A stretch of DNA of 63,698 nt, counting the filler, from Klebsormidium nitens (taxonomy: Eukaryota; Plantae; Klebsormidiophyceae): the NCBI GenBank assembly GCA_000708835.1. It is 8 parts of 8 records of this genome, joined end to end, with 100 filler letters (N's around TTAATTAATTAA, not from the genome) between each part and the next. Parts side by side here need not be neighbours in the genome. Positions count along the whole stretch, not along the records: positions 1 to 14,480 come from DF238045.1; 7 more parts are not named here. One strand, 5' to 3'. The position numbers were made by a program, and so were the translations under genes. Below the pieces are notes generated by a model that worked only from the letters and a program-made list of their open reading frames with translations, was not told the origin of the DNA and ran no database searches. Below, one piece after another: positions 1 through 23,200 of the stretch; positions within the stretch are counted from its first letter, which is position 1, and the number at the start of each line of letters is the position of its first letter.

Positions 1-84
1 GGAGTAAGAAAAGGTGCAGCTTTTTCCGTGAAGTCAATGTGACGGTTAAAATAGGTAATTACCTGATTTACGGTCCGGTCATGC

Positions 85-235
85 TGACAGATAATTCCAC
101 AAACATGGTTTTAGTCCAATTGACAGCTAAACCAAGATTCTTCGGTTAGATCATTGTGACATCTAAAACAAATTCCTTCGGTTAGATCAGTTTGACAGCT
201 AAACCAAGATTCTTTGGTTTGATCAGTTTGACAGC
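85..235. repeat. 36-bp tandem array (4 units plus start of a 5th) with internal imperfect palindrome, upstream of the KDZ transposase
   Basis: TGAC recurs at 85, 121, 157, 193 and 229 (exact 36-nt period). Units at 121 and 193 are near-identical (TGACAGCTAAACCAAGATTCTTyGGTTwGATCA) and contain AAACCAAGA..TCTTyGGTT dyad symmetry. Confidence 0.85.
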
Positions 236-512
236 GAAGGTAAAAGTTTCCGTTACCTACTAGGTTACTCTAGCCTAGTAGGTTTGACGGTCAAATTGAC
301 CGTCTAGAAAAGTGCTCAGTGGACGCGAAGAGGTTTCGAAGAGTCTTACCTGCGCATCGCGCTTGCAAGCTCGTGCAGCACAGGCAGCAGAAGCTGGTCA
401 GATTCTTCCTCCCACTTTGGACTTTCAGTCTACATCTTCAAGGCGCAGGCCGTCCATCTATCAATAGGCACAAGAGCTGCCATTGGACATAGTCGTATAG
501 GCAGGCGCATAC

Positions 513-3500
513 ATGGAAGGGGAGCCACCCAGTAAGCGTGGTCGGCCCACTGGTCCACCCAAGACTGCATACATTGGATACAAGGATGGCTCCACTCGCA
601 GGATGGCCCCTCAGTTGAATCTGTCTACTGGCAGCTTGAGAACCAATTCCCAACTCACGTGTAGCCAGCAGCAAGGCAGCATTGCCAGCAGGCCTGTCCC
701 TGTGAGAGCTGGAGGCTTTTTCCAAGCCAGATCTAGACAGCAGCAAGTACCAGGCATAGATTCTTTGGAGGACGCGCCTTCAGGAAGCGATCCTCCAGCT
801 AGTCAGCAATCAAAATCAGGTCCCTCGCCTCCAGCGACAGCGGATTCTGGTGGCCAGCACGCTCACGACGACTCTTTGGACTTCACTCCTGAAGCCAGAC
901 CGTCTGTAATAGAGGTCCCTTCCCGCGCTCAGGATCCAGCAATTGCTCCTATCAATGCTCCGGCGGCGGATCCAGTCCTGGAAAAATACTGCTCTCAGCT
1001 GCTCAGCAAATGCAGGGAGCTCCCGCCTGGGCTGCCCTTGAGCGAGGATTCACAAGGACAGGCAGCTTTCTGTGTTCCCGCAGTCTCCTTTCCGAGCGGT
1101 GAAATTGACTGGACGCGCTTTGAGTTTCCTGGTCTGAAGATGATCACGTTAAGGGAGAGCGGATCGGGTGCAGTCTGGTGGTGTTCCTGCTCCGACGACC
1201 TTGTCTTACAAAGGAGTTTGTTCGAGGGCTTGTCCAAAACAGCAATGGACCGCACCTTTCTGGCTGGCCTTGTTGGCCAATGCTATCATCTAAAAGTCCT
1301 CCTGCGTATCGGAAGCACGCTTGGGCTGCAAATAGAGGATCTGTGCAGGAGGCAAGTGGTGATTCCCCCAGCGGTACGGGTGGCAGAACTGGAGATCGAC
1401 TCTGAAGCTGACGGGGAGCGACTGGTTATTGTTACAAGCGTGCCTTTGCCCTGGTCAGGAAAGGATGGTCTTCCCATAGTCTTGGTTGGCTGCGCCAGTA
1501 GGGGTTACGCGGTAGTCCGCCAGACCACCCGGGGAACTTGGGCTTGCACCACTTGTTCCGGCAGTGGTCGGATAAAGTGCTGGCATGTCCAAGCTCAGGT
1601 TGAGGAAGTCGCCACTGGTTCAGTTCCTTCAAGCAGGCCCGGTCTTACTGCCGCAGAGTTTGAGGAGCGCCTCAGGCGAGCTCTAGACCTCAGCACAGGG
1701 ATGAGGCGCTTGACGTGTTTGAGTAGGGTGCAGATTCCAGAGCCTCACTTGATCGGGCCAGAGTTGGCAGATGTACTGAAACGAAGAGGCGCTCTCGATC
1801 TCCGGTTCCCGCTCAGATGCTCCATCAGATCAGAACTGCGGGGGGCTCAATGTGGTTGTGGTCGGTCTTGGGAGGAAGCAGAGAAGAAGTGGGTGCCAGG
1901 TACAATTTTCCATCTCACTGCCCCTGTAACAACCGAGGTGGAGGAGTGGACGTGTCCATGCGGTGGCAAGAAGCATTACGACGGCGCCTCGGAAGGTCTC
2001 CTCAACTTCAGCAATGTCTACCTCTTCAGCTACGAGTTGCTGAATTGGTGAGTGTCAGAAGCTTGCAAAATTTCAATAAACTTATGCAGCTAGTCAAGAT
2101 TGCATGTCCCAATGCAGGGCAGAGTTGAGCTCGAGTCTGGTTCTGATGCTTGGCCTTATTGGAGTGCGGATCAATGACTGCACGAAGGACCGGTACTTTA
2201 AGAGGTAGAGAGGTTGGCGCGGACCAAACGCGTGACTGGCCAATGATTATTCTGACTCATCAATGTTTACTCTGCTTTTGGACAACTTCTGCTGAGCCTT
2301 TTTCAGTACAACAATTAACCTGCTTGTGTATCATATGCTCTTGGAGAGAATGGTCCTCGTTCTGGCAGTTGGTCACGGTCTCTAGCCTAGTAGGCCTGGT
2401 ATGGCAGAACATGCATGTGCCTGTGAAAAAAGATGCAGAAGTTCAGATTGCTCTGATTGATTATCAAAGTCGGCCGATTGGGCAGTTGCAAGATCGATCG
2501 GTGCTCTCAGGTTAGGGGGTTTGGCAGTCTGGCAGGACAAGCGTCCCACCTTTCTGAAACACATGCTGTTGATTGAACCTTGATCCGCTTTCATGTTTCT
2601 TGCTCGCCAGGTACTCTCATCAGTTCTGGAGGACCAAGCTGCCCTTTTTCTCGATGTGGAGTACGCAAGTATCCATGTACGCGGGGATTGGGCTATCTCC
2701 GGACCTCGTGAAGAGGTACGCCAACATGCGCGCTAAATTCCAAGATGCCTGGCTCGACTACATCAGCCTCCAACGGATTGACTACAGGACGTCCTACAGC
2801 TGCAAGTGCCGAAGAGATATCGACTGTGGTCCTGATGCCAGGTATGCAAATTCATAGCTTTCCTAAGCTCGTCTCTTCGGAGGTTTCATTGGTGCAACTC
2901 TCTTAAGCTCTCTTAAGCCCGCCTCCTTTTGGAAGGAGGCGGGCCCACCTCCCTCCTCGTTGTCAATTTGTGATCGTAGGATTCGAAACTTCAGCCGCTC
3001 TCTATTTAAACAAAGCAAGACTGATGCTTAAAAGCAGTCCTCGAAAGCTTTTGGTCCAAAGTAAGTCGTTCTCCCGATGTTGCCAGACTTTGACGTAGTA
3101 AGTATGAGTCCCTGGAACTTCTTCGGTTTATTCGGAATGTTATTCTGATTACTTTCTATTGTGACGCGTATCACGGATTCTGATTGCGGCCTTCATGAAG
3201 AAATTCGTATGCCTAACCCAAGTTTCCTTGAGCACGAAGTAGTAGGTTTTGTCGATGCAGCTTTATATGACAATTCATAGTCGTTGTATGCCTTTGGGCT
3301 TTGTGGGCGACTCAGAATCTACATGGCTGGGAGTTTCGTTGGTAGTCCGCACATATATGAGGACAGGTCCCTTTCGCCATCCTCGAAATCAGTGGGGTTT
3401 CACGTGAACATGAGGCAATCAAGAGACGTCCGGCTTGCGCTTGTTGTTGGCGAAAGCCCTTGACTGGTTGGGATAACAGCGGCAGTCTGCTGATTGTCTT

Positions 3501-6500
3501 GGCACAAGAGCGGCGGTCTGCTGATCTGTTGCAAAAGAGAGGAAGTCTGCTTACACTAATGTGTGCACTTTGATATTGACCGGGCGACAGCTTATGTCCG
3601 TTGACACCAGCAAGCGTCCGCTGTCTTATCCCTTAGAACACGACCGGCGGCCCGCTTATGCGAGGAGGTGGCTGCCTATGCCTCGAGCGACGTTCGCTTA
3701 TGTCCCTTGTGGTCGCCGACTGTGTTTCCGTTGTAATCAATATGAAGCACGGACTTTTCTCCCATTCTTTGCAGGCCTGAGGGTGAACCGGAGGAAGTCA
3801 CTGCGGACGGCGTGCTGCTTGGGTTCAACTCGAACTTCAGCTACCTGGTCCAACCGTGGACCAGTCCTGCATCCGAACCCCTGGTATCCGGGTCCCTGCA
3901 CACTGATCGCATCCTCGTCAAAGCCGCTCCCGCTCGCCAACTTTTGCTTCGGTTCTCAAAGCGAAGGTAAGATTGCAACGACCGCATCTCTTCGGAAATA
4001 CAGAGTTTCTTCACCACACCAAGAGCGAACCCAATACAGGGTGGCCTTTGAGTGAATGGACAAGAAACTTGGACTGCCTTCAAAACACTAGGGCTGGGGA
4101 CGGAAAAGCTCCCTTTCAGACCTCGTCGCCCACTGTTTCGAAAGCATTTGGTAGCTGAAAAGGAAACAAAGACAACATCCCGCGTTATACTGGTCACTTT
4201 CACGCCAAGGCATCTCTTCACGTGGCCCAAGGACAGTCCCCACAACAAGGTGTTCTACTCGATGCTTCCAGCGCCGCGCCAAATGCAGATATATTGTTTG
4301 CATATGAACTTCTCACATATTCAATGACATATTGTATTGAATTTTCCGGCGTTCTCCCACGCTTTGATGCAGTAGCCATTCGGTTAGGAACAGCCCTGGT
4401 AAGACACGGCGTTTCTCTTTCAAGTAGACGTTTGTTACCCTACGACTGGACATATCCAAAGGGACGCTTGCTCGAGGACGTCCTGACTCTATCTTCAAAG
4501 GATAAGGGATTATTTATCATTTTTTTTTGAGAAGTTTCGCCGCATTGTTGTCGTACTGTATGATGCTTACTGAAAGTGCGCCGGGGTTGGATTTACCAGG
4601 TTCTGAACGCGTTGTCATCCACTTCAGAGTCGTCTCTCGAGCCACATCGTATCTCTGCTTTTAAGACTTGTGCACATGAATGCCAATCTGATGCCCGTTT
4701 TGAAAACATTGGTCGTTTGTTTGGCAGTGTGGCAGCTCGGGGAGCGGGCCTAAGTGATGCCGAGTACGTCGACCTCCGCACTCTCATTACGGCTGAACCA
4801 GAGGCCTCCGCCGTCGACTTTCTCTTGACCGATCCACTTGTTGACAAGGTAAAGTGGATCATAACCCGAAGTCTCTTCTGGAAGCGGATCAGTCTCCGGC
4901 AGTCTCTTGTGGAAGTGGATCATACCCCCGGGGAAGTCTCTTCTTGAAATGGCGACACCAGATTGCTTCTCCCGACATGCAGCGGGTACGTATGGCAGCC
5001 TATGGCAGTGTTCGTACCGAGCATAAGGCGATCTCGCCCTCGAAGTTTTTGCCTTGCTAAAACAGCCGATGAAAGCCAGCGTTACTCGACTTTCCCTGCA
5101 GATGTAAGACTGACACCGACGTTCATTTCTTCTATAGGACCGCCACTTTGCGCGGCCGGAATTGCGGGAGTTCCTGCATGCCGTCGCTTCTCCCGCGCCC
5201 ACCTGCTCTCTTCTTCCAGCAAGCGTGTTTGCCATCGTCGAAGACCATCTACTTGTGCACGGCCACATCTCCGACTTCCAGGCGTACCAGAAGTTTGCCT
5301 CAGACGCGTCCGTCCTGCACACGCTCGTAATGAGCCTCCAAAAGCAAGCGGATGGTAAACTCGACCGCGCCGCGATCGAACTTCTCAGGTCAGTCCGTTG
5401 ACCAATCCCCCAACTACTGAATTGCAAGCACATGGAGCGTGGAAAAACAAACGACCTAATGATGAGTATTCAATTCTTCAGTTTAAAAAGTATTGTAGAC
5501 GCCAAAATCTTTAGTTTTCGTTGGAAAAGCCCCTGCATAGCCGCATGGAGCGAGTACGTTTGGGGAGGTAATACAAATTATGGCGTCAACTTTTCTGGTT
5601 CCCCCATAGGCTAGTTGAGTTGTAGGAAGCGCAATCACGGCGTTACTCTTCGAAACTATATTTGGCAAGGTTGCAGAAGGGGAAGTACTGGAACGGAGGC
5701 AAAAGACTGTGACGATAGCAGCCCGGTCACTCAGGATTATTCGGTTTTTGTTGCAGCGTTATGCTCGCTGTGGCCCGTCGTGCGTTCCAGCCGGCCGTCC
5801 AACGTTCCATGTCTCAGACTGCCAGCAGCAAAGAGCCCGCTTTGTCAGAACATCCTGATTCTGGTAAGTATCTTATTGGTCAGAAATTTTGTAACCTTTT
5901 TGGCAACCTCGGATTGATCACCCGGCTCCTCATTTCTTGTCTCTTGTCTCTCTCGTTGCTGTCGTCTCTCAGCCGTTTCTTACAAGTTCGAAAGCTTTGT
6001 TTTCAATCGAGAGTTGCTCCGTCCTGTCTCTCTTTGGCGTACTCACGATCTATTTGTGATTCGTCGCGACTCACTCCTTTACAATGTTTCGTGCTTTCGC
6101 CGCTACGGCATCGCGTCAGACGCGATGTTGGCCGACAAGCTACTCACATGCACTGCTCCATTTGCAGATACGACCACGTGGACCGACGAAGAGACATTCA
6201 TGCGGACGGGACAGTACTTTCCGAATCTGCCCGTTGTTCGGAATCTGCGGCGATATCGGGCGGATTATGTGAGCCAAAAGTCAGGAGCCACGTGCCGCAA
6301 GTATCAGTATAAGCATCGAGGCATCACGCCAGGCCTTCTCATTGTTTTCTGCTTGAAGTGCAGCCGGTGCATCGGCTTCCTTGTCATGCGCAATGCCGAG
6401 TCCCCGAGAACCTTGTTCGAGGTACTTTTCACCCGTTGGAAGCGTGCGCCAAAGCTCGTAGCTTATGATAACGGGTGTCATTATCACGCCTTTAGTCTGA

Positions 6501-6856
6501 ACAGGGAGCCCGAATGGGCCAGCAATACTTTAGTAGGAATTGACGCGCTCCACCAACCGAATCATAAGGATTGTAGCATAGCTTACGCCATCAAACGTAA
6601 CCCATCGTTGCACAGTCGGAACACAGTAGTTCATGAGCAGAGGAACTCGCGTGTGGCAAACATCAAAACACAGTGCGCCTACATGAGTCAGGCTACCTTC
6701 CTAACGTTCACTAGGTACTACCTGCACTGTTTGAACCGCCAACAAGACAGAGGGGATTTTCCATCACTGCCTAACTTAGTGGATGTAGACCTTACTGAGG
6801 CTTTAGATAACATTATTGAGGAAGGTAACATAGATCTCGAACTTGGTGACATCTAA
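513..6856 (+). CDS. KDZ-family transposase with SWIM-like fingers and CxC4-like cysteine cluster, 7 exons, about 1057 aa
   Basis: Exons 513-2047, 2611-2841, 3775-3966, 4728-4848, 5138-5388, 5757-5863, 6120-6856. All junctions are GT..AG and phase-compatible (3174 nt). Motifs: WWCSCS..CYHL and WACTTC..CWHV (SWIM-like); CGCG..WTCPCGGKKHYDG..GLLNFSN.YLFSYELL (CxC4-like); FQDAWLDYISLQRIDY..SCKC; VTADGVLLGF; TPGLLIVFC..GF..M..AES..YDNGC..NREP..IDALH..H..CS..NTVVHEQRN (KDZ catalytic core). The exon 7 acceptor is the least certain. Confidence 0.88.
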
Positions 6857-8434
6857 ACCAATTAATCGAATGTCAAATGTACAAATGAATTATTGATTGG
6901 CAGCTAGCATTCTTTTACGAAGTTCTTGTGTTGATTAAGTTGAGTCCAAGGTTTAAGTGCTGAAGAATGAAGTAGTAAACCCAATCGTTGCACTGGTGCC
7001 GCTTGGGGCCTCGCCCAGAATTGCATGATGTGCAAGAATTTTCTGCGGTCCACTATGCAATAAATTGATTCATTAAGAGTTGATCAACAATTCTGGTTGC
7101 GCCACATTCAATTGGATGTGGAAGCGGCAAGGTCAATTGTCAGGCAGAGGTTGTATCTGTGTCATCAAATACGAGTTTTCCCAGCATTGGGCCTATATGC
7201 AGATGTACGCAATATATATTCATATGCATCGTTGGGGAATGACTACTACCAAACAATTGACCTACCAGGCCGCTGTTCATATATATTGCACAATATCGTA
7301 AATGTCGATCTTGTGCTAACGCGAAACTTCATGCAGTCAAAGCTTGTCTACACCTATGTAGTGACTCAGATTGATGACGCATCGGTGGTTCTGCGGATGC
7401 GCATAGATTTGACATAAGTGACCCGACTGTGACTCGGAAAGCATGACTGGTGAATAGTATGAGCCCCGAAGCGGTCCGACCACTGAGGCACTGAGTGGTC
7501 AGTCATATAGTTAATCCTTGGGTTATCATTCAGCAAGTGATAAGATATGTCGGAAACAAGATAGGAACTTAGGCTGAGGCTGGTTTCAAAATAGGAAGCA
7601 CTTGATCACCATGTGACCCGGTATGTTAAGGTTCCGTTTGCATGAGAGACGCATGCCGAAGGTAGCGTACAGTCGGCGGGCCCCAGCTCGTCGTCAGTAT
7701 TTATATGCCGAGTCGCCTGGCACGAGTCAAGTATTTGGCCCATATTGTTAGAGGCTCAGTTAAAGTCGGCTTTTGCCTAGGTGACGCAAAGCGCCTAGGC
7801 TGACCATGCATGACGGGTAACCTTAAGATATGCGTGAAGTCCTGACCGTCAAGTCAACGGTCAACAGAGTCGTTGACCCGGATAGCTCAGATTCAGTGAT
7901 GCCTAGGATCAACTAGCGCTCGTGAATGATGAGACCGATGACCAACTAGCAGAAGTACCTCGAGGAAGAAGCCTATCATTTGCCGAGTTACCTCCGCAAA
8001 CCATACGATAGGCCTTGCTTCATGTCCGGGGTGCATGAAGCTGTCATCATGAGTCAGCCGGCACGACGTTGTAATGAAAGCCCACGGCAACTTCATCCGG
8101 TCCATGTGGCCAACGGACTTGCATGGCTGCATATTACTTGCACTATTACACAATTGCTTGGATTGTCTTGTGCTTTTCTTTGTTTTCTTTGTCGCAAACT
8201 TGGGAAATAACAGACGCTAGCCTAGTGCCACGAGATTACAAGACCTTTCAATATGTTTCCACCTGACCAATCGAATCAACGTGTGCCAGCGTCACAATAG
8301 AATTAAATTGAAGCATTCACGCATGGGTTTTCATAAACAATTAAACTAGTTTCCAACCTTGACTTTGCATGGTTGACCAGCCGACTTAACTTGCTTGAAA
8401 TGGCTTTCAAAGTACCCACAAAACAACTACTTAT

Positions 8435-11400
8435 CTAGCGACGTGACCCGTTCATGAGCTCCTTTAACACTTGGCTAACACCGGCACTCGCGGCACGTCT
8501 CGGTGGCCGGCTACTTTCACATACTGATCCAGAATCTTCTCCTTGACGTGGCATGTTTTCGTCTCTCCCACCTGCACGAGCGAACAGATTCTGAAACCCA
8601 ACGTAACAGAAGCAACGAAGCAAGCAGTCGACACAAACGTTTTTGCAAGAGTACTGGGCGAATAGCTGGGGCGGAGCTCAAAACTGCCTTGTCAACCCCC
8701 ATCCAAACGTGATACGAGCTTTCAGATCGCAAGCTCCATAAGCGTGGCCAGATCGGCAACAAAGAGAGACAATCTAGTACCTTGAGGTGCAAGGGACTCC
8801 AGCAACACTTTTAAGCGTCAAACTTACTTGGTAAGTCCGCCGAGCCACTTCGTTCGGCCTTCCCGCCTCTTGGCTTCTTTCCTCGTCCTGCAAATGATTG
8901 CAAAAAAGTGTTCCTCGTCTTGTCGAAGCCATCACCGAACCGAGAATTGATGCAACATTGCGCAAAAGAGCACCCTCACAGCACTACCTATGCTTCTTAG
9001 ATTGTCTCAGGAAGCGTTCGATGAGCAAACGAGACATCTTAAAAGAATTGAAGCAAGCACATAATTTCCTTGAAGCCCGTCACTTGATCTCAAAGCGAAC
9101 AGAATCGAGTTTGCGTGAACATCAATACCTTTTGGTACCATCTCAGAGGCAGCCGTCCTTTTTAAGCAACCGGACGGTAGCGGTGCCAAACGTGGCGGCA
9201 GCCGAGCATGGTCGTCTGGTCCTGTGTGGAAAAAGTCCACCAAAGTTAAGGGTAAAAGGTTGCGGTCAGCCACCAAAGGCTACACTAACGCAAAATGGCT
9301 TCAAACTTTTCACTTGGCACTCTTCATGTCGTGCAGGTTGGATTCAAAGCCGGAATTCCGAAGCCTGAACGACTCTCCAAACCTTTGGCTTTCAAAGTTG
9401 CTTCAATCGGTCGACGACCTGTTTGTTGGTCAACTTACTTGGCAAACTCCGACTCTTGGCCTTACTTTTGACTTTCGCCTTCAGTCCTTTGTTGTGGGGA
9501 GGTACCTGTGAATTACCTTTTGGAACGTTTCGCGGTGGCCCATCCTTGTGAGCATTTGGAAGAGCATCTCTTCGCCCCCTACTTTGCTTCGTGCTCAGCC
9601 GCGCCCTGCTAAGTACGTGGTATGACATCGATTTTGGACCCACCTTTTCCTGCCATGGGCAGTCCGTCTCTGTCTTCGCCCTCTCGCTGCTCCCTCGGCG
9701 AGGTGTGGTCCATGCCGTCCTCCTGCTGCGCGCTCGGCGGGACTCCTTCCTCAAGTCCGGGCCCTTCCGGCTGTCCACTTGGCGGCTTATGTTGTTGAAG
9801 TTCCCCTTGGTGCGTTGCTACCGCCCCTACGTGCTGGCTGTCCCCCTGTTGCACTTCAAGTGCCGCACCGCGCTGCCCCCTCCCTGGTTGCGCACTTGGC
9901 GCCGTATCTCGCTGGTCCGCTCCCGGGTGCGCACTCGGCGCGCCATTTCTTCGCTTCCACCCGGGCTGCGCACTCGGCGCCGCGTCCCACTTCCCCCCTC
10001 CAGGCTGCGCACTCGGCGCTGCGTCTCGCTGGTCTTTTCCAAGTTGCGCACTCGGCGCCCCGGGTCCCTGCCCCGCCCCAGACTGCGTACCCGGCGCCAC
10101 TGGCCCCTGCCCCGCCCCAGACTGCGAACTCGGCGCCCCGGGTCTCTTCGCCCCCCCAGTTTGCGCACTCGGCGCCCCGGGTCCCTGCCCCCCATCAGAC
10201 TGCGCACTCGGCGCCCCAGGTCCCTGCCCCCCTCAGACTGCGCACTCGGGCCCCCGGGTCCCTGCCCCCCATCAGACTGCGCACTCGGCGCCCCGGGTCT
10301 CTGCCCCCCTCCACGCTGCGCATTTGGCGCTGCGTCGCGCTGGTCCGCCCTCGATCGCGCACTCTGCTCGTCGTCGCATCGGCCCCCCCTGGGCTGTCCG
10401 GCCGTTGCCACGTCACTCTGGCCCCCCCCAGAATGCGGATTCAGCGTCGCATCTCGCTGGCCTGAGCCCGGTTGTGCACTCCGCCCCCCGTCTCGCTGGC
10501 CCGCTCCCGCTTGCGCACGTGGTGGCCCGTCGTCCTGGCGCCGCCCGTGCTCATGCTCCTGCGCTGCATCTGCCCCCGGGGGCAGCTGACGTTCTTTGAC
10601 ATTACCGTGCCCGGATTCGTTTGGGGCTTTGTCTAGGTTCCTGAGGGCAAGTTTTGCGCGGTCTACAAAGGCTGTCAGGAGAGCGAATACCGCATCTCGA
10701 TTGAACTTGTCGACTACCTCGCTCGCCACGGATGGATCCAAGATGACCCGTTGGAGACATGACCATCGTTCTGCAAGCTCTCCTCCCATGTTCTCGGCTA
10801 GGTCTTCTAGCAACTCGCACTCCTCTATGAACCTTGGCCAATTGCCTGATCCAACGCGGAGATGCCGGACCACAGTCTCCGTGTGCGCCTCTACCAGCAA
10901 AGTGTCCGTCGGCACCGCCACGTCTAAACCAGCTTTGTGGAGCCGGGTGGAGACGGTTCCAACACCTTGCATGGTGTGCAGGACGTGCAACACCTTGCGG
11001 CTGACGTCACCTTGATCGAGCAGGTCACCGAGCAGCTGGAGGAGGTGTGATGGGGCGTTGGAGTCCTGCTCGTATGGTGCGGCGAAATGTTGTACAGAGT
11101 GTAGAAACTCTGTAGCGGCTACTTGGGGTCGTACCGCTTCCCGAGCCTCCGTAGTACCTGCCCGAGGTCAACATATACGCATGAGTTGATTGACTCGCTA
11201 AAATCTGCATAAGCAGAATTACAGAGAAGTTGATCGAAGAGAAGATGATTAAAACCTCATGTGAAAATGAAAATTGTCAATGGAGTTCTCGGGTGATCAG
11301 GTGCTATCTCAGATATGGCACGTGCTGAGTTTGGAGAGAGCAGGACCAGAGAGCAAAAACGTGATGTACAGGTAGGTCGTTATGTTCTGCTTCAAAGACA

Positions 11401-14029
11401 ACTGTAACACTGCCAGACTGATTGACTCCAACTTAAATTAGTTCGCAATAACGTGATACAGGGATCAAGGCAACCCTCTTTGCAGATTGACTTGATGCAG
11501 GCAAGAAGAATCCTTTTACATGCCACAGAGAAAAATCTCCTGAAAGCGACTCAACATTAAGCTGTACACTCCAGCTCGAAGAAGCACGACCAAGTGAGAA
11601 AAGCTAGAGAAGGTGAGACAGTGAGACAAACATGTACCTTGTGCTGCGTCTTTCTCCACCTCCTCAATAAGTTCGTCCATGGCACCATCTGGAGCGTCAT
11701 CCCAATGTTCCTGCTCCCATCCGTTGGACGGTGGCACTGTGCCCCCAGTTCGATGAGCTCCCTGTGCTGTTGCAGCGGGGGCTGCCGTCTGGCTATTGGT
11801 GCATGGCTGGGCACCCGCTCTTGCTCTGCACCGGTGAGCTTTCAAGGCAGCCGCTGTGGAGTACTCGCCCACGCAGCGCGGGCACGGAAAGGGCTGGGGA
11901 CCCATCTGCGCCTTGGTCCTCCTTACTCGTCTTGGCGCGGGGGACTGACTCGGTGCGCCGGAGTCGCCGCCTGTCACAACATAAGAGAGGCTCCAGATTT
12001 GCCAGGAAACACATAAAGAAGCACCACGAGAACAAGATGGTCAAAGCCTACGTGGATCAGAGTACAAAAGCTTTTTGCTGAGCGTGATGGTATTTGCCCC
12101 GTATTTGCACCTACTCATCATCCACCGGAGCCAAGTCATGGTTGACCATGCCTGCCTTGCACAGCTGTATTGACTCAAAGAATTCAACTACTGTACAAGC
12201 AAGTATCTCCAGACTCGCGCACCAACCTGAACAAGCTTGACTTGAGAAAGAGGGAGACAAGTCTTAGTCTTGAGCTTTTTGAACAAAGCTGATCACTTAG
12301 TTAAGACCATGTTCATGTTTCTGTCTTTGGCAGCTTTCGAAGAAGCTGCCAACTCATCATGGGAAGAAAGCAGATGTAAAAGTTCCCAAACATTTCTCAC
12401 CTTCCTGTCCTTGGCCGCTGGTTGCAGGAAGTTGCCACATCATCACAGCCTTCTCGCCAATGAGCTCAAATATGGCCACTTTCCGACTGTCGGACCCCTT
12501 GAGGCCAGCGGCGACATGCGGGCCCACCACACACCTTTTGAAAACCTCCAAGCAGCCGCGCTTCTGCTCTTCTTCTGACAAGGTTGTGCCGGCCCCTGCA
12601 AACCACATACAATCAGCATTCCGAGGCCCTAATTTAGCCAATGTGTCAAACTAGAAAAAAATGTGCTCCACCAGGCCCGCTGCACTTTTGAAGCTTCACA
12701 TTCCCAAATGACCAAGGGAGAAAGACTCTAAGCTGGAATCATCAGGCATACACAAAGCTGGTCCTTTCCTCTTTCTCTACTTCCGTGCTTAAATGCAGGT
12801 GCGCAGCAACTACGTACTCACCAAAATGTGTCACAATGTTTTGTGCCATCGCCTCGAGAACAACGATGGTCTCATCAGCTTTCAGCTTCCATGCTTTTGA
12901 GAGCGGGACAGCCGGAGGCCACCATGCCAAGCGTCCACTTGCAGCCCCAAAGGCGGCAGTAAAGGATGTGACTGCCATTGAGGGAGAGCAGACTGGCCCC
13001 AGGGATGTCACAGCGGCCTTCCGCTCCGGCACAGAGAGGTGCTTAGAAAGAAGAGTGGCAATGTCTGCCGACCGCAAGCTGTCCTGCAAGGACACACATT
13101 GGTCGTCAGCCTTGGACGTTCACACCTTCTCAAACGAGTCTCAAACATCCCCAGGCTAGCCACAATATCGCTGGAACTGGAAGCAACAAGAGATTCAGTT
13201 GGGAGTCAAGCGCACCATCTGCACATCATCCAGCCTGTGGCCCATTCAAAGCAGAACTCCAGATCAGCTCTAACAATATGGAACGGCATTTGCAATCCTC
13301 ACCTTGAATTGTTGTGCGGTCAACTTTGAAGTGTTTGCCTGCTGTCGGACCTTCTCCATGTAACCCTCATTTTGCCAGATGGGAGCAAGGACTTCATCAG
13401 ATCCTGTACACACCAGAGCGGACTACATTAGACATCTGTTCTTGATGGACACTCTATTTGCTTTGAATTGGGAGCTGTGCTAGTCTTTGGATGAAACTAC
13501 TCTAGCTATCAGTATTCCGAGACATATGATGTCTTGCTGTCATTGACTCAACCTTCGTTTTCTCCTTCCCCATCAGGTCACAAAGGTCTGCAAAAGTCAG
13601 TAGGTGTAAGCTATGGTTAAAGCAGAGCTCACCGATGCGGATGCTGCCATCCCCATAAGAGATGCCCCACACAAACTCTTCCACCCCTGCTCCATTGGCG
13701 CGACCCTTCGCAAATAGCTTCTGCAAGCTGGTTTCAAGACTCCGTCTCTTCCTGTTAACATCTCTTGGAAGAGTATGTCTTGACTTTCCAGACTTTGTGC
13801 GGACAGGGAGTCTCAGGAGCCCTGCTTCAATGCAGTACCGCCTCAGGGCTGCTGCCTTATCTTTTGCAACCCGACACGCTTGCCTCATCTGCTTCGGAGC
13901 AGTTTCAATGACATCGTTCCACTCTTCCGGATCTCCAAAGATAATTTGCATCAGCTCCTGCGTTTCCTCAGCAATCTCATCATCCCCAAACTCGTCCTCT
14001 TCGTGATGGTGGTTTCTGGCCATACTCAC
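8435..14029 (-). CDS. Multi-exon partner gene of the KDZ element (WP-motif helical region, C2HC finger, 13-aa repeats); frameshifted at about 10232; 5' and 3' ends uncertain
   Basis: Exon-like segments with splice signals: 14029-13633, 13083 to about 12760 (RLAWWPPAVPL), 12595-12401, 11970-11638 (FPCPRCVGEYSTAAALKAHRC), and 11157 to about 9609 (phase-1 junction AAQG|TTEAREAV verified). Weaker candidate exons lie near 8890-8830 and 8590-8435. Several intermediate junctions were not resolved. Confidence 0.55.
9890..10551 (-). repeat. Coding tandem repeat, about 17 units of 39 nt (13 aa, consensus xxPGAPSAQxxGG); one unit is 38 nt
   Basis: Plus-strand GCGCAC-type anchors at 9890, 9929, 9968, 10007, 10046, 10085, 10124, 10163, 10202, 10240 (38-nt step), 10279, 10318 and 10357, with degenerate units to 10513. 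Confidence 0.92.
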
Positions 14030-14480
14030 TTCAGTATAACAACAGCCAGCAAACTGCAGCTACGTGGCAGCTACTGTGAAGCCGGAAGAAGAGGACAGAT
14101 TGTCACCCGATCTTGCTGAGCAGCCATCGATGATTTATAATGTCAAGGCCTGTTCAATAGTCAAGCTTGCCTCCCTGGTTTTCAGCTGGCCGTCACGCTG
14201 GCAGCACTTCCCTGAACTCAGGACTGAAGAGTGAACGCACAAGCTCAATTAACTTCAAAGAAGCCGAGGCAGACGAGCCAACTTCTTTTCAAAGGTTTTG
14301 GCGCCACATGCAGAATTACGTCCTCCTAGTATGCGCAGCCCAGATCAATTTGACGACGACAGCAATCTGGTTATAGGTCGTCAAATTGACGCACGCGAAG
14401 AAGATACGCGTACCGGTCAAACTGACGGCGGCCACTTTCCTGACCTTTAAGAGTCATTCTGACCTACGCAGAAACTTGTA

Positions 14481-14580
14481 NNNNNNNNNNNNNNNNNNNN
14501 NNNNNNNNNNNNNNNNNNNNNNNNTTAATTAATTAANNNNNNNNNNNNNNNNNNNNNNNNNNNNNNNNNNNNNNNNNNNN
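14481..14580. other. Artificial contig linker
   Basis: 44 N + TTAATTAATTAA (stops in all six frames) + 44 N. Confidence 0.98.
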
Positions 14581-17370
14581 CGGGAAAGCATCACAGATAG
14601 ACAAGACCAGGTCGAGTCATCTGGATAGAACGCCGTACATCAACGGTCTCACAGCGCGCCGTTAAGACGTAACCGCTGTCGTTTCGCTAACAAGCAGCTA
14701 ACGAAATCCTGACGAGAACGAGGTTAGGCTTAACCAGACGTAATCGTCACAATTGCGCACGCACGTGCAGTTATGAATGATGCAAATTGTGACTTTGGCA
14801 CTTGAGACATCGTAGGTTGAAGCACAACGTTAACAGATGACATTGAGTCCGCCTTCAAGGAAGTTCCATGCCCGTTCCATGGCTAATGAAATCGTCGACG
14901 GCCAGTGGATATCTTACAAAAGTACGCCGTAAACGGTTTGAGCTAAGTCGACTCTCTACATTGAGTATAGTCTATATTATAGGTTTCGGGCCACCACTGT
15001 ACTCCCACCATGTACTATGATCTATTAGTAGTAGAATACTATGATAGTCACTATGATAGTAATGATAGTAAATTATTTGATTATTCAGACACAGCTGGCC
15101 GAAAAATGCCGCCATCATCATTTACTCGGTTGACTTATCACGCCTAGCATGTTGTACGGTAACAAAGTAATATGGTGATAAAGCCTTGAAGTTTGAAAGG
15201 TCTCTCCAGGTTCGCGGGTCTCTCGTTTGAAATCGTTAAGCCTTGGCAGTCCAATTCAATAGCCAATTTCTCAGACTGCCCGTCCTCAGAACTCATCACT
15301 TCATCACAATACCATCCTGCCCCCATGGTCCCATGGGCCAATAGCTTTGTAAGATTTTTGATGAAAGTCGCGAAGATCGCGAAACAAAGTTGCGGTCTGC
15401 CAATGCCACGGTCTCTTGGTCAACGTCATGCAACGTGACAGCTAGAAAGCTAGACGTAGTGACTAGACGTGACTTGACAGGCTACTTGAGTCGACTCTGA
15501 GGCTTACAGGCTGTCAGGCCCGAGTCAGGACCTACTAAGTACTTTTAAGTATGATCATCTTTCCGCGCGTGACGCGCGCTTCTTGACCCAATGGATCGAA
15601 GTGGGATTGCATAATATTCGGTTTGATGATTCGTGATTGCCCTCCAAATTTAGCAAGTTGTCACCTTCACCATTCACCGGCGAACAAGCTGGGCGCTTTT
15701 TGCGGGATAACGATATCCAAAAGGCTCATATGATTACGATCGGCTAAAAGTGCATCCAGTGGCAGCTACCGACGTCATCTTTACGCAGAATGGCTAGTAA
15801 CGACTGTCAGAATTTATGGCACTCGGGATTCTTGTGGCCGCGCACTAACTGCACGTGGGCTCGGTTGTATCTGCCCGGCTGGAGGTTCAAGCCTTTTAAC
15901 TCTTTGAAGCTCCCTGAAAGTGCCCGGGACTGGCACCGCACTCGCTGGCCCACGACTAGCACGAGCAAGTTTACACGCCCGGAGTCCGGACTTTGTGCCG
16001 GAGTCGGCCGAGTCGGGCACTCGGCAGACTTCTGACTCACCGGTCTCCGTGCCAGAGTCGGCCGCGAGTCGGGACTCGCAGACAGACCTACCTATTACCG
16101 TTTTAGTACGTATAGGATAGGTAGGTATGTCTTTTTACGGTATGGTCACTGCCCGGGGAACAGGCTGGGTTAGGTTGCGGGTTAGGGTGGGCACGAGTGC
16201 GGAGCGGGTAAATTTGTTGGTTTAGGTTTTCTTGTTTAATGATTTTACCCCGGGGACTGTTGCTATTCTATCGGATCTCTCCGAGTCCCGGTGGCCCTGC
16301 GGTGGACTCTTCAGATGCTAAACCCCAGGCTGGCATGGAGGATCTGGGTGATCCCTGCAACATTATCGTCCTGCAATTGGGCCCCTGCCCATGTGAACAT
16401 TGCGTCATTTCCAGAGCAGTGAAGTGAGATGATAGTCAGATGCCGCATCCATCAACCTGGTGTGGCAGAATTGACTTCATAGTGCGGGGATGTAGCCTGT
16501 AGGCTGCAGCAGGCCTGGCAGCAGGCCACGCGGCCGCTGGTGGCTGCACCCCGGTTTGCAAAGTCCTGACACCTTCCATTGAACGTTGTCAAGCTGCTGA
16601 CATGACAACTCAGCAGCTACGGTACAACGCAGGTATCTTGTAGAACCATTATAGCTTCAGAAGTGAGGTAGGAATTCTGCACGGTGCACTCAGCCTGCAC
16701 TGCATGGATCAACTGATCGGCTCAACACTCACAAGCTGCGCCGGCCGCCGCGCTCTCATTGTTCCGTACATGACGTACGTGAACTATAAGGTCAGGTACG
16801 TGCGTTTTCTCGTTTATCTTGGGGTTCCAACTTCCTGCTCCCGTATGGATATGAGTACAAAGATCCTGAACGAGAAGGAACGGTCAGACTCCAGAGCATG
16901 AGCCTCTCTTTCGGCGGCGCGGATTCGATTCGATGCTAGTGCCACTGGACATTACCTGGCATCTCAGGGCCAGCTCCGACTTGCGCTTCCAGCTCGCGCA
17001 TTCCAAGTCTAAGCGACTCAGCACTTGATCAGAGAGTGACCACTGACCGAGCTCAGAATCCTGTAGGATTGCCATGATTCGCTGGCTGATTACCCAAGAA
17101 GGATGGAGACAGCTTCAGCTGGAGGACAGCTCGTCTAGCTACACAACAAAGCAACGACTCCAATCGCCCTCATCCAACCACTCTTCCTTCAAACAGCCGT
17201 GCAGGGGATGAAAATCTGCTTTCTTAACAGTCCTTTCAACAGCAGCTACGACAGGGGCTCACTAGCTCTTCTCATGATCCAGCGTGTCACCGTAGTTCTC
17301 TTCTAGCTTGCTTCATCTGTCTGTCTTCTTGGTACTCTTTGCCCTGCTGATTCCAGCTGACTCTTTCCAG

Positions 17371-18283
17371 GGGGGGCCATGGCGGTGTGCCCGTACCCCC
17401 TGGTGCACGGGAAGTGCCCCCCGGAGCCAGACACGTTCTTTGCCTTTGGCTATTCGGGGGTGTACACGTTTGCAGCAGTTATTGGGACCTTGACGTCCTA
17501 TGCCATCTATGTCTGGATCAAGCGGGTCAAGAGCCGGAAGGGGAAGATGAGCGGTGTCCACGCGGGGGGGTTCAGATTTGCAGCCGCCCAGGTGCGTTGC
17601 GCTCCCTGTGTCAGCATTCTACTTGCATCTTGATTGAAGGTGTATTGGTGCAGCGCGCCCTAACTTCTGCAGCGTGTGTAAGCTCTGCAGAGTTGCTTTC
17701 TAACATTTTCTTGCCAAGAAGTAAAACACCTGGGGTTTAAAAAGACTGTGCACGTTGATTGGGCCCACACCAAGTGTCTCCACTTACCTCAGGGAATCAG
17801 TTTCTGGTCTACTCTGTTCTTTCTGCCTCCCCCATTCAAAGTTTTATTGCAAAGACTGTGCCAAACTTTGTGACACCTCTGCCCACTTAAAAGGGCCCTT
17901 CTTTCCCAGTAACTTCAAATCAAACCCCTTAAGCAGGCAGGCGGACGCACAGCAACAGCACCTGTGTTTTACCTACTCTAAAACTTTTGACTCTTTGTTG
18001 TGAGGAAGACATATGCCCTAATCACCTGCCATGTTGAATTGGGCTCCACAGATCCTTCTCATACTGGAGGACAAACGTTCTTCTTGCCACCTTTAAGCGC
18101 AGCCTTCATTGCTCAAAAGAGGCAGCAGTGCTCTTTTCATAAGTAGGAACGTGTGTTTTACTCCTACTTTGATTTCTGCAGGGAAATGTCCCCGCTATGA
18201 TCTACATCAAGAACAACGCGCCCCACTTCGATGTCAACACTGCATTGCATGGTTGGACTGCCCTCCACGCTGCTGCAATCCAG
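17371..18283 (+). CDS. Partial gene: single TM helix followed by ankyrin repeat(s); continues beyond the contig end
   Basis: Exons 17371-17591 (YSGVYTFAAVIGTLTSYAIYVWIKRVK TM plus basic stop-transfer) and 18182-18283, phase-0 join giving FRFAAAQ|GNVPAMIYIKNNAPHFDVNTALHGWTALHAAAIQ (ankyrin G.TALH.AA consensus). Confidence 0.7.
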
Positions 18284-18554
18284 GTCAGAGTTGCGCTTAC
18301 ACTCATACTTTGTTGCCAAGCCAGTCTGCTGATCGTGTCCCAAAACTTGGTGTATTTGAGACTTTCGCCGTTACAGGGTTTGGAACTTCCCAGCTGTCTG
18401 GATGTTTCAAAAAGGCACATGTGTCTAGCAAATGATAGGCGCCCAGCAGTTTGTCCTTGACCACTTGAAATCAATCCAGTCAAGATATCTTGGTAGAGGT
18501 GGCGCCAAAGTGATCGGGATCCAACTGCAAATAGCAGTCTGCCATTGTAGGTAC

Positions 18555-18654
18555 NNNNNNNNNNNNNNNNNNNNNNNNNNNNNNNNNNNNNNNNNNNNTT
18601 AATTAATTAANNNNNNNNNNNNNNNNNNNNNNNNNNNNNNNNNNNNNNNNNNNN
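18555..18654. other. Artificial contig linker
   Basis: 44 N + TTAATTAATTAA + 44 N. Confidence 0.98.
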
Positions 18655-19104
18655 AGACGGGCTTTATCCGTATGGTATTCATTGGCCATCTGGGCTGGCT
18701 TTCAAATGCTTCCATTCGGGCTCGATTCATCATGAACCTGACACACAGTAGCGACTAGACTTTGGGAAAGCAATTTTCCGTTTGGTGACATTCAAGAAAG
18801 TCACATACGATGAAAATTGGAGCTTTTAGTCAATGTCCTTTGCAATGAAAGCAGCGCTCACTTGGGCAGTTGCGGCCGTTGCTCCCGATTGACGCGCCAG
18901 TCGCGTTGTAAGCGCAAAGCAGGCTTGATACGGCTCCGGCGTAAGCGCACAGAGTCTGCTGCAGAAATGCTCTTGCGTCCGCAAGGTTTTGCTGAACCAA
19001 CGCGGGGCAAGAGTTGGGGACGGTACTTCCTGCAAAGAACTGATGCCATTTTCGAGCGTTCAATCAAAGCGAGGTAGTCGCTGTATTATACATATATAGG
19101 AGTC

Positions 19105-20240
19105 CTAAGGAGAACAACTTGGAAGATCTTGTAAATCAGCGTTGATTCCCGAAACGACAGAGATGCAAACCAGATCGCTCCTCAACATTAAATTGCGTTG
19201 AGACCTTTCAATTGGAGTGGTTGTTAGTATAGAGATCACACCCACAAGGAGCGAGGACCAGAGTGCTGAATGATCGCATCTTCCTGCCACGGGCGCACTA
19301 AAAGCGATCGGAATTAAGAGCTGCGGCTTCAAGTCGCGGATTCCTGTGCAACCCCCTGGTATTTCAAAAACTTGCTTGAGCCTAGCATTGCAGAGACTGC
19401 CGAAGATCGTATGCCCGCTTTGTTTGAGCAAGCTTGGGTTCCCCTATTCTCTTTGTGCTGTTTTGTACCAAAATAAGTTTCTCGGTGGACTCAACGGATC
19501 CAACGTTCAATTCAACGCCTTCTAGATCCACTCAAAACCCTGCTCTACGCTTGATCCCCGTAAGGACAACCTTCCGCACTTCTTACCTATTTGGGGTTCC
19601 AGGGCGGGCATCCGGTTTCTCCAATCAAAATGACGTCTAGGTTGTCGTGCCAAAGTGGAATATAGCCGGTCAGGTCGCCTTCACTACATCGGTCAAAAAG
19701 AGGTTTAGTCCGTTTCTGTTCGAAACCAAAACGGCGCTTGTTCTCACCTGGGCAGGAGACCGCGGGGCGTGTTGGTAGAATTTCTCCAGGGACAGGGGCC
19801 GTCGGAAACATGCTAACGAGAACACCGGTTGCGTTGTACGTGCAGACCGTTAGTGAAGTGGCGGGGGCACCACTGGTCGTCACGTTGTAGGAACAGTATA
19901 CTTGGGTCAGCGGGTTTGCTGGCATTGACGCGTCACGAGGCAAGCACAAGGACGCAACCGTACCTGCACACGCCCACCGGAAGCTAAGCTCAAGTGCTTC
20001 GATAATCAGAGTCCAAGCTGGTCATTTTCAGAGGACTTCGTATATTCTAAAAGTCCCTTAGTTTCCCAGCAGTCGCTCATCTGAGTCTAGTTTCAATGCT
20101 GCCATGAAGGTCGTTGTGGATTCACCTGACGTCTGCGTTGGTGACAGAGTTTGCATCAGCTTCCGGTGGGCGACTGCGGTAGTTTCGCCACGGAACCGGA
20201 CTTCCGTCAGCGGGACGACGGAACCGGAGTCTTCTTCCGC
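19105..20240 (-). CDS. Possible spliced gene of unknown function (Ser/Thr/Pro/Cys-rich exon)
   Basis: Exon-like segment at about 19966-19747 bounded by TGCAG and CCAG|GTGAG (GTVASLCLPRDAS..YCSYNVTT..CTYNATG..SCP). Flanking ORFs could not be joined in phase; no recognised domain. Confidence 0.25.
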
Positions 20241-23200
20241 AGACATTGCAAACACCTGAGCTTGGAAGGACAAACGTGTGTCGATCATTCACTAAGACGC
20301 ATTGTACAGGAAACTCAACTTTGACGTCGAAGTCGGAAACGGCCGCTGATCACGGCAGAATGAATCATATCCGATCTGTAAAGGCTAGTTTCAGCTGTGG
20401 CAGCCCTCTTCAAAGTGCTTTGAGATCTCAAAATTTTGCTACTCAGATTACACCGGGGCTTCGGAAGGTCATTGAAAAGAAGCTGAAGAAAGCTACTGGA
20501 TGGCCAATATAGGTGACAATAAACACACAATCGGATGTTAACATATTCTGTTTTGAGTTTATAAACAGAATGACGATCACTTTGTCTTCTTCTTCGGGTC
20601 TAAAAGCAAAATGACGATCAATTTGTCAGTCTGCACGCGCGAGTCATTGGGCAGGAAATCTCTCATTACTAGACATGAAAGAGAATCATGAGAGCAAGAA
20701 AATTTGGAAGGAACGAGCGTCAAAAAGTAGGTTCTCTTAGTTGCATTAAAAGCTGCTTGTGATCACCACCAGTTTTTCCTTACCTCTACATTTCGTAGAA
20801 CGAGACAGAGTAGGCCGAAGAGACCAATGAGCGACGACTTGGCCGCCATTTCTGCAAGCAGGTCGCGCGTTTTGCAGACGGCTGAAATCAGGGACACCTT
20901 TCTCGCAGCCCTAGAAAATTTAGAAGAAGTGTGATAGAAACAAAAAGGGAAATAGGAGCCTGAGACGGTGGTCTCGCGGTGCATCCTCATGTCATGGTAG
21001 AGACAGGCTTTCAAGGTTCCAAGATCTGCACAGCACTCCTTGGCATGACTCGGCATACAAGTTCCTCAAGCGGGCTTGAAAGTGGAATTCTCGTAGCTGG
21101 TCTACGAACCGTTTTGCGGCGGTTGCGTCCTCGGAATTCATCCGAGGAAGTTTGTCGCGGATTCCGCCCTGTTCCACGCCCCGAGGCATTGGAAGAGATG
21201 GGTGCTGTGCTTCTTCGCAACAGGAGATCGAAGAAAGACGTGTTCCAGCCACGAAGAAATGTTCCCGGGGGTATCCATTGATATCTGATCTGCGGCGGCA
21301 TCGAAGATTTCGTTTCACTCTAGAATGTTGGTCAAGCCAGTCCTTTCTTAACGCCCGGCTGCAAGGATCGTTACTTTGATTTACAATCTTGAGCTCGGTC
21401 GATTTCTGCCTCGATGATCGCCAGCTCTCAAAGGGGAAGTGGTGCAAAGCCCAACAGTACTTGGAAGCGGAGCGCTCCCACATTAGTTTGCCTTGCCCTA
21501 CTTTCCCATGGACTCGCGGTCCATTTGTATTTACATGAGGTGACGTCATCACTCGCGGTAGTACCGACAGAGTCACGGTAACCGGGCCTGATTATGATGA
21601 GACTCTGAATCGAAGGCTGTCGAAGTTTAACGAGGAGGACTCAAAAACCCAGCTTCGCCAGGGTTGGTATAGATGCGCTTCCAGAAAAGCAAGGCTGCTC
21701 CATAAAGCTCTTTGTTACGTGGTAGATTGCTCTGACGGCCCCCTGACGGCCGGTTAATTTGCCGGTTTATCAGATTTCTTGCCTTGCAAGTTAGTGGAAC
21801 TCTTCTAGACGGTTTTCTTGGCACCGGGCATGCGAGCGCCCAGCGAACCGAGCTCCGGTATTCGATTCAAGGCTCCACCTGTCCAGGTGCTTCCAAATGA
21901 ACACGTGTCCCGGGCATTCAACTTGCACCTCGCAGGCGTCGAAACCTCGCGCTTAGACTTCACTCCTGTGGGCACGGACCCATTGGGCTGCTGCTTTGGC
22001 GCGCGCGCAAGGCGCGCGAACTCCGAGCGCCAAAGCGCAGGGAGCAGGCTTCTCATGATCGCGCCCACGCGAATGACGTCAAGCCAACGAGCTGGCCCCA
22101 AAGCTTCTGGGTAACGGAGTCGTCCCAAACTCAACGTGTAAAGTCTGCAGCGCAGCTAGTTTGGACCGCGCATCCTGGACCGGCGCTCCGCGGTAAGAAC
22201 TGGGAGTCTTCAATCCTTTCCGGTACTCGTTCTCTCTGTTTGCTTGCTAGGAACCTGGGGATCTTTCCATGATGACGTCTCCAAGACGCCGTTCGGCGTC
22301 TTGTCCGCCCATCCGGCGTCTCACCCAAGCACTGATCTCACCCATGAAGCGTGGCCGTCGCCGAGGCCAATCTGAGCCGCTCGTCCATTCAGTTGCCTCC
22401 CCGGCTGGCCAAAACTCCAACCCCTGCAGAGACACGCGTTTTCCGAAAGCGCCAGAGTCTCCCTCTTCGCGCGCAACTGCACCTCGCGGCCGCGTGCACG
22501 CCTAACACCATTTTTCGTTCCAAGTTAACGGATGATGAGCTACAGCGAGTCATGAAACTCGTGCGTGCCCAAAGCCTCCAGTCTCTGGATCCCGCTCGCA
22601 CGCAGCGCCTCCGCGGCCGCGCGACCGACGCCTACAGCGGTCAGCCAGCTCCGCACAGAAGACCAGCCCTTGATACTTCGTTTCACTAAACCACCACATG
22701 GCCTCGCGCTCCACCCGACCGCTAGTTCTTCTTGCAGCCTCGCCCGCCACGAGTGCCTCGTGTAAAACCGGTTGGAACCGGTTTGGCTTTTGCCTTCAAA
22801 AAAAACGATTGACTCTATCAACCCTACTTGCCGTGCCTTTGTTGCCGGCTTGCCCGTCTGCGCCTCAGGACGGTCGTTCCAAAAGCAACGCGAGGAAAGT
22901 TAGCAGCCTCTGGCGGTGCGTTTGGAGGTCTTCAATGGATTATGCATCTGTTGACGAAGCCCTCTGATTCGATGCTACCCCATTTGCGACCACAGCCTTG
23001 TTACCCGCACCCGGTCGAACGGTGTCGCATCCTCGCCGCTTCCGCTTTCGATTCCGCGTCCGCTTCCGCTTCGGAGTCCGCTTCCCTTTTCTGCTCTTGA
23101 ATGTTTGACCGTTACTTATACTCCGACATACTCTCAACCGCAGGACAAAAGAGCCCTGGAGTTTCCCTTACGGTGAACAACGGCTGGCCGGCGGAGGCAC

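Follow-up and report, generated by a model that had tools for sequence, protein, structure and literature searches.

Two convergent genes occupy scaffold DF238045.1

The window analysed here, meaning the whole stretch of DNA under study, is one entire small scaffold of 14,480 nt, DF238045.1 (assembly GCA_000708835.1), from Klebsormidium nitens, a streptophyte alga as the initial annotation of this DNA had supposed. We found two inward-facing (convergent) genes, each beginning near one terminus: a transposase gene on the + strand, encoding a protein of 1,041 amino acids (aa), and a spliced companion gene on the − strand, here called the partner, encoding a protein of ~1,028 aa. On the evidence given below, we consider it likely that the scaffold represents a nearly full-length copy of an autonomous DNA transposon from the KDZ superfamily, of the cut-and-paste type and low in copy number in K. 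nitens, with an element length of ~14.6 kb. The element matches the KDZ superfamily on every tested feature except a formal match to the Pfam KDZ model PF18758.

A seven-exon model of the transposase gene was built by placing the annotated protein on the DNA and by considering GT/AG sites and conserved blocks, the latter found by comparison with a paralogous locus on another K. nitens scaffold (L003, described below). All introns in this model are GT-AG, 1,041 codons can be read without interruption, and the exon edges match the blocks that are conserved in L003. The gene runs from an ATG at 513 to a stop codon at 6854-6856, in agreement with the KDZ-type transposase gene placed at 513-6856 (+) by the initial annotation. 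Exon 1 (513-2047), identical to the annotated protein KFL_010960010 where the two match (100%), encodes the N-terminal region with Cys clusters and the CxC4 domain, which ends in exon 2 (2611-2841), a block conserved in L003. Exon 3 (3775-3966) shares 94% aa identity with L003, and it is followed by exon 4 (4728-4848), exon 5 (5138-5388), exon 6 (5757-5863) and exon 7 (6168-6856), the putative catalytic-domain exon with the stop codon. The Pfam CxC4 model (PF18717, 'associated with KDZ transposases') matched the end of exon 1 with an E value of 5e-10 and the annotated protein P0012 with an E value of 4.4e-15 (56 bits vs a cutoff of 26.9), so that the transposase carries an N-terminal zinc-chelating domain of the CxCn kind. 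No Pfam match was obtained on the transposase exons other than exon 1, and the SWIM domain was not detected by Pfam in the transposase; in exon 1, CxC...CxH-like patterns were noticed on visual inspection only.

Homologues of the last exon (P0001-P0010) occur in Logan, ENA and JGI contigs, and one of them, P0004, gave a weak match to PF18758 below the cutoff (E 0.024). Moreover, PF18758 is present in 26 of the 30 named Atlas clusters that lie nearest to the last exon in language-model features (scores 0.96-0.97), and the exon thus looks like a KDZ catalytic domain at the level of sequence features. The public model KFL_010960010 is partial, lacking the start of exon 1 and the entire last exon (6168-6856), which bears the KDZ-like catalytic motifs; the present model therefore corrects a public transposase annotation from which the putative catalytic exon was left out. 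A 29-nt tandem repeat with 2.3 copies lies at 3484-3551 within intron 2 of this gene.

The partner is transcribed and spliced. RNA-like contigs of K. nitens from runs X5 and X6 over 8300-14200 gave nine exons and eight joints, which read CT..AC on the + strand and are thus all GT..AG on the − strand, and contigs of the DNA run X1 are colinear with the window across this region. The introns are located at 8572-8827, 8888-9128, 9222-9643, 11158-11637, 11971-12400, 12596-12821, 13084-13302 and 13404-13632. Exon 1 (13633-14294) contains the 5′ untranslated region (UTR), an ATG at 14023, an acidic N-terminus and the stretch SLQKLFAKG..GVEEFVWGI, and is followed by exon 2 (13303-13403). Exon 3 (12822-13083) encodes RLAWWPPAVPLSKAWKLK, with the WP motif at 12916-12921, and shows 83-87% aa identity to paralogues. 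Exon 4 (12401-12595) precedes exon 5 (11638-11970), in which a basic patch is accompanied by the C2HC finger CPRCVGEYSTAAALKAHRC, encoded at 11828-11884, whose Cys/His ligands are kept in the paralogous protein P0011. Exon 6 (9644-11157) encodes a helical domain, predicted from AlphaFold2 (AF2) secondary structure, and then a 13-aa repeat array, detected by Tandem Repeats Finder (TRF) as a 39-nt coding repeat of 9.4 copies at 9966-10330 (− strand) with GAPSAQPGGGQRD-type units. Exons 7 (9129-9221) and 8 (8828-8887) lead to exon 9 (8260-8571), which contains a probable true stop codon at 8435-8437, at the limit of conservation, and the 3′ UTR. The WP motif, the finger and the other motifs were all located where the initial annotation had placed them.

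From the ATG at 14023, the assembled frame extends over 870 codons and stops at 9827-9829 inside exon 6. This frame equals an annotated 870-aa gene, and the annotation puts a separate 112-aa gene on the remaining exons, the split concerning window positions 9827-10330 and 8435-9713. The other frame of the 39-nt repeats, the one with GAPSAQPGGGQRD-type units, is open through exons 6-9 to the stop codon at 8435-8437, and this PSAQ frame is also the one in which the paralogue P0011 reads its own repeats. The exons from the ATG to this stop codon total 3,083 nt, one base short of in-frame, and a spacing of 77, not 78, between the repeat copies at 10111 and 10188 marks a 1-nt slip within the array, between ~10111 and 10227. 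Nucleotide similarity to L003 ends at 8436, in the same stop codon. Judging from these reading frames, we conclude that the real partner probably has ~1,028 aa and that the scaffold bears a one-base slip, either true or an assembly error; 10047-10248 is covered by none of the DNA and RNA contigs compared. The public annotation, in which one gene was split in two by this slip, is corrected accordingly. Regarding the initial annotation, which had the partner at about 14029-8435, its spliced structure, convergent orientation and probable stop at 8435 hold, whereas the start codon lies at 14023 and the frame as assembled stops at 9827.

The gene pair recurs at other loci with unrelated flanks

When residues 1-235 of exon 6 were used as the query in a word search, one protein was returned, K. 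nitens KFL_005850040 (P0011), with 60% identity. Its gene lies on K. nitens scaffold DF237534.1 (L003), convergent with a CxC4 gene, KFL_005850050, and between window bases 2 and 14454 the two loci are colinear, with exons 73-86% identical and most introns unalignable. Two further copies were found in sample SRR23617307: L004, which is close to the window and alignable through the introns with a synonymous divergence (dS) of 0.26, and L001, which represents a third lineage. The convergent pair is present at every related locus with enough context (L003, L001 and L004); K. nitens contributes two loci and SRR23617307 two or more, and their flanks are unrelated. The co-occurrence at several loci that the initial annotation had proposed to look for was therefore observed, and its view of the two convergent genes as one mobile unit agrees with this recurrence and with the ends and target-site duplication of L003 given below.

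In the last transposase exon of L003, tblastx matches at 17351-17031 and 17029-16661 lie in different frames, placing a frame change at ~17029-17031 that reflects either a decayed copy or a homopolymer assembly error. The segment 256-512 of the window, between the terminal block and the transposase ATG, could not be aligned even with the closest copy, L004, though the introns of the two align at ~85%, and this promoter/5′ UTR segment appears from the comparison to have been replaced.

The element has defined ends

Four copies become homologous at one and the same position, window base 2 (GAGTAAGAAAAGGTGCAG), upstream of which their sequences are unrelated. This point marks the KDZ-side terminus and the start of a conserved terminal block at 2-205, which is 79-83% identical across lineages whose introns mostly fail to align. 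Further inward, TRF and motif statistics identified a 36-nt subterminal tandem repeat (3.2 copies, + strand) with TCAGTTTGAC at 120-235, and a palindrome with TTGAC cores, GACGGTCAAATTGACCGTC, was read from the sequence at 281-304, with a motif match at 290-299. At the opposite side, motif statistics and the comparison with L003 revealed a partner-side subterminal motif cluster at 14340-14480. According to the alignment with L003, the window ends ~99 nt before the partner-side terminus, and these ~99 nt are missing from the scaffold; a Logan DNA contig of run X1 runs ~96 nt beyond 14480 and then stops, which fits the predicted terminus.

When inverted, the far end of L003 can be aligned with the KDZ-side ends along ~125 nt, indicating imperfect inverted ends. 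With scoring suited to ~60% identity, the L003 inverted ends reached a score of 119, compared with 57 ± 10 for shuffled sequences, a score reached by 1 of 3000 shuffles and by none of 278 genomic control windows; likewise, none of 1000 shuffles reached the score of the L003 far end against the window's own end. An earlier test with +2/-3 scoring was marginal, with 80 of 2000 shuffles reaching the observed score. Directly outside both L003 ends we found GAAACGG, at 9286-9292 and 23087-23093, a 7-bp direct duplication for which the chance of occurrence within ±20 nt of the predicted boundary is ~0.002; the 7 bp are perfect, and an 8-bp reading needs one mismatch. Because of the inverted ends and the flanking GAAACGG duplication, the L003 element is delimited to 9293-23086. 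The alignment of copies suggested at the outset thus yielded a sharp start in four copies and, at one locus (L003), defined termini with a 7-bp target-site duplication.

Both ends are also rich in short motifs of the TTTGAC type, which the initial annotation had noticed upstream of both genes. TCA(G/A)TTTGAC has 7 matches compared with 1.17 expected, a number that none of 200 shuffles reached; six of the seven are found no more than 300 nt from an end, where the motif occurs in both orientations. TTGAC/GTCAA is overrepresented at both ends as well (P 1e-4 and 2e-3). A reading of the TTGAC clusters as W-box promoter elements was considered and not adopted, the motifs being part of a block conserved from the exact terminus and placed symmetrically at both ends; the clusters may have a dual role, terminal and promoter. 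A metagenome scan with an 18-nt terminal motif gave 57 matches, none with extended similarity to the window, and these were attributed to chance.

Both genes and the terminal block are conserved

Between the window and L003, the ratio of nonsynonymous to synonymous divergence (dN/dS) is 0.14 for the transposase (dS 0.79, 724 codons) and 0.18 for the partner (dS 0.86, 616 codons). The similar dS values show that the two genes diverged together as a unit, and the low dN/dS ratios imply that both were needed throughout; these estimates indicate that transposase and partner have been under equally strong purifying selection since the copies diverged. Such selection on both genes, together with the low copy number, the old divergence and the normal spliced transcripts of the partner, would also be compatible with a domesticated or ordinary host gene pair that was copied by segmental duplication and is no longer, or never was, mobile as a unit. 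In addition, the lineage common to K. nitens and SRR23617307 (lineage A), with its alignable introns, could reflect vertical inheritance. We consider a host gene pair unlikely, given the sharp homology boundary with unrelated flanks in four copies, and the inverted ends and 7-bp duplication of L003. The non-coding terminal block speaks in the same direction: its conservation at 79-83%, where most introns are unalignable, fits selection on cis sites for mobility. In the comparison of the window with L003, the terminal 166 nt of non-coding DNA retain 79% identity where dS is ~0.8, as would be expected if the ends were still selected as cis sites for transposition, which argues against simple domestication.

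Several observations weigh against the interpretation as an autonomous KDZ transposon. The Pfam model PF18758 matched no exon in the window, nor the annotated proteins P0012 and P0015. Only two K. nitens copies were seen, both of them old (dS ~0.8), and there is no sign of recent movement. The target-site duplication rests on the single locus L003, the window itself having no flanks. Moreover, the partner frame is broken by one base as assembled and the last exon of the L003 transposase contains a frameshift, each of which may be real decay or an assembly error. Finally, the structure models of the partner are of low confidence (mean pLDDT, the predicted local distance difference test, 42-47), and its function is putative.

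The element resembles known KDZ transposons

KDZ elements are known in fungi, animals and algae; many are giant, and accessory genes are frequent in them (PMC12477816, PMC8226300). In Cryptococcus deneoformans, KDZx1 encodes a transposase with CxC4, SWIM and KDZ domains, the domain order of the Zisupton clade, together with one open reading frame (ORF) of unknown function, and it is flanked by an 8-bp duplication (PMC11588098). The CxC4 domain of the Klebsormidium transposase points to the Zisupton type, and on this sequence feature the element probably belongs to a Zisupton-type KDZ family, although it may be Kyakuja-like. It shares with KDZx1 the CxC4 domain in the transposase, a second ORF inside the element and, probably, a KDZ domain, the last exon being KDZ-like. 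Both are large cut-and-paste elements of low copy number, with a short target-site duplication. However, KDZx1 measures 6.4 kb and has an 8-bp duplication with no detected inverted ends (PMC11588098), whereas the Klebsormidium element is ~14.6 kb long, with intron-rich genes, a perfect 7-bp duplication, ~125-nt imperfect inverted ends and no SWIM domain detected by Pfam.

Kyakuja elements have 7-bp duplications and no inverted ends (PMC12730594). Kyakuja-1_LB and Kyakuja-2_LB of Laccaria bicolor resemble the Klebsormidium element in belonging to the KDZ superfamily, in the 7-bp target-site duplication and in one end starting with 5′-CA, but they carry a TET/JBP dioxygenase (PMC12730594). In contrast, the Klebsormidium element has CxC4, reported with Zisupton, and subterminal repeats, and no TET/JBP gene; TET/JBP and HMG-box companions, which the initial annotation had named for fungal elements, gave no Pfam match on any exon or ORF of the element. 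The giant KDZ elements of Chlamydomonas reinhardtii and Ectocarpus are likewise algal, longer than 10 kb and equipped with additional transcribed genes (PMC8226300, PMC12477816), but they are higher-copy and often much larger, and the Klebsormidium partner is a lineage-restricted orphan.

Since accessory genes of unknown function are on record for other KDZ elements (PMC11588098, PMC12477816), the system is not an undescribed one, contrary to what the initial annotation had suggested. The family, its host and the orphan accessory gene are new, but the kind of system is not, and in other respects the element is of a kind that would be expected. In the searched literature, we found no KDZ family from a streptophyte (Klebsormidium). 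The present analysis defines, with termini, target-site duplication, subterminal motifs and corrected gene models, a KDZ family, probably of the Zisupton type, from an alga of the streptophytes that stands close to the lineage of land plants.

The partner is an orphan of Klebsormidium

Searches with the partner used single exons or the annotated protein of the paralogue, P0011 (KFL_005850040), and exons were joined only for the frame checks. Pfam returned no family for any partner exon or for P0011, even at E 10. When all 1.84 billion representatives were searched with P0011 by phmmer, the only matches were the query itself and an ORF of exon size from SRR23617307 (P0016), so the partner has no host paralogue and no detectable relative in fungi or elsewhere in this search. 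A sequence search of the PDB gave no relative, only a designed zinc-finger protein at E 7; the Atlas feature search with P0011 reached only 0.80, a chance-level zinc-finger cluster, with TM scores up to 0.23; and a metagenome scan with P0011 yielded no relatives. The partner is thus, as far as these sequence searches indicate, an orphan confined to Klebsormidium sequences.

The AF2 models of P0011:1-545 and of the exon 6 helical domain had mean pLDDT values of 42.5 and 46.7, and helices are predicted to flank a disordered middle that contains the finger. A VIA wide fold search peaked at Z 8.3 with generic helical bundles (TRFH, CTLH-CRA); no fold was assigned because this value is below the level counted as meaningful for helical models. 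The P0011 gene model (L003 10506-10670) omits exon 2 (33 aa), which is ~90% conserved at the protein level in L003, and the missing exon may have hurt the N-terminal prediction.

The initial annotation had called the partner KDWP-like, that is, a member of a conserved KDZ-associated 'WP' family common with fungal Kyakuja/Dileera elements. The predicted all-helical N-terminal region around the WP motif would agree with this idea. However, the name KDWP is not used for transposon proteins in the searched literature, among the matches listed, and the Pfam search gave no family even at E 10. The phmmer search, confined in its matches to Klebsormidium sequences, showed no similarity of the WP region to proteins beside fungal KDZ genes, and the Atlas features were no better than chance. 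We therefore abandoned this identification and regard such a shared family as highly improbable.

A putative role of the partner in transposition

En/Spm, with TnpA and TnpD, and PIF/Harbinger, with a transposase and a Myb-like protein, are two-protein transposons. The Klebsormidium element is similar to them in having a second element-encoded protein and repeated subterminal motifs at both ends. The likeness is confined to mechanism, as an analogy: the superfamilies are unrelated and show no sequence similarity to the element, and DNA binding by the Klebsormidium partner is putative. We propose that the N-terminal zinc modules of the transposase (CxC4 and Cys clusters) would bind the subterminal repeats, and that the transposase would excise and reinsert the element by DDE-type chemistry. 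The partner, which combines a basic patch, a C2HC finger, two predicted helical regions and a disordered 13-aa repeat tail, would be an element-specific accessory factor needed for propagation of the element, and its likeliest role would be that of a nucleic-acid- or transposase-binding protein which assembles or regulates the complex at the repeats. By analogy, this role would most likely correspond to that of TnpA in En/Spm or the Myb-like protein in PIF/Harbinger.

A stronger version, which we regard as possible and rather doubtful, is that the orphan partner is an obligatory second transposition protein that reads the TCA(G/A)TTTGAC repeats or bridges the ends through its C2HC finger and helical domains. 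If true, KDZ transposition in the streptophyte lineage would be a two-component system, and the same might hold for the additional, unexplained ORFs in KDZ elements of fungi and algae. As an accessory gene constrained as tightly as the transposase (dS ~0.8), the partner is in any case a tractable candidate for studying the role of such ORFs.

There is a fair chance, short of an even one, that the partner instead lies outside the transposition machinery, being carried along as passive cargo or acting on the host, for instance in anti-silencing or regulation. The accessory genes of fungal and brown algal KDZ elements are varied and have no shown role in transposition (PMC11588098, PMC12477816, PMC12730594). 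Similarly, a distant algal KDZ relative (L006/L007, from SRR31724215/SRR31724214), 52% identical in the last exon, has a convergent gene of another kind downstream, located in L006 at 3477-5774 (−) and encoding an Ulp1/Peptidase_C48 domain (E 5e-15). Against this reading stand the retention of the partner in all three diverged lineages, under constraint as tight as that of the transposase, and the fact that it has no host paralogue, but neither its retention nor the missing paralogue separates a transposition factor from a factor merely benefiting the element. The convergent gene of L006/L007 also contains a C-x2-C...H-x-C stretch with a weak C2HC match to the partner (E 0.012 in a tiny database), which is a lead only. 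Given that this gene differs from the partner, a convergent second gene may be a common layout with varying content; the contigs of the distant KDZ homologues P0009 and P0010 are too short to display a second gene.

Further sequences matching the window

No RNA family was found by Rfam in the window. Over 11319-11432, within the partner region, DNA run X1 gave two alternative contigs that differ by two substitutions and a CAG insertion; in a haploid alga, these two variants hint at a second near-identical copy or a mixed culture. Runs X10-X18, which carry other organism labels or are freshwater metagenomes, contain pieces that are 90-99% identical to the window over 8300-14200, introns included, and some of their contigs continue into unlike sequence. 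These pieces may represent related Klebsormidium strains or further copies.

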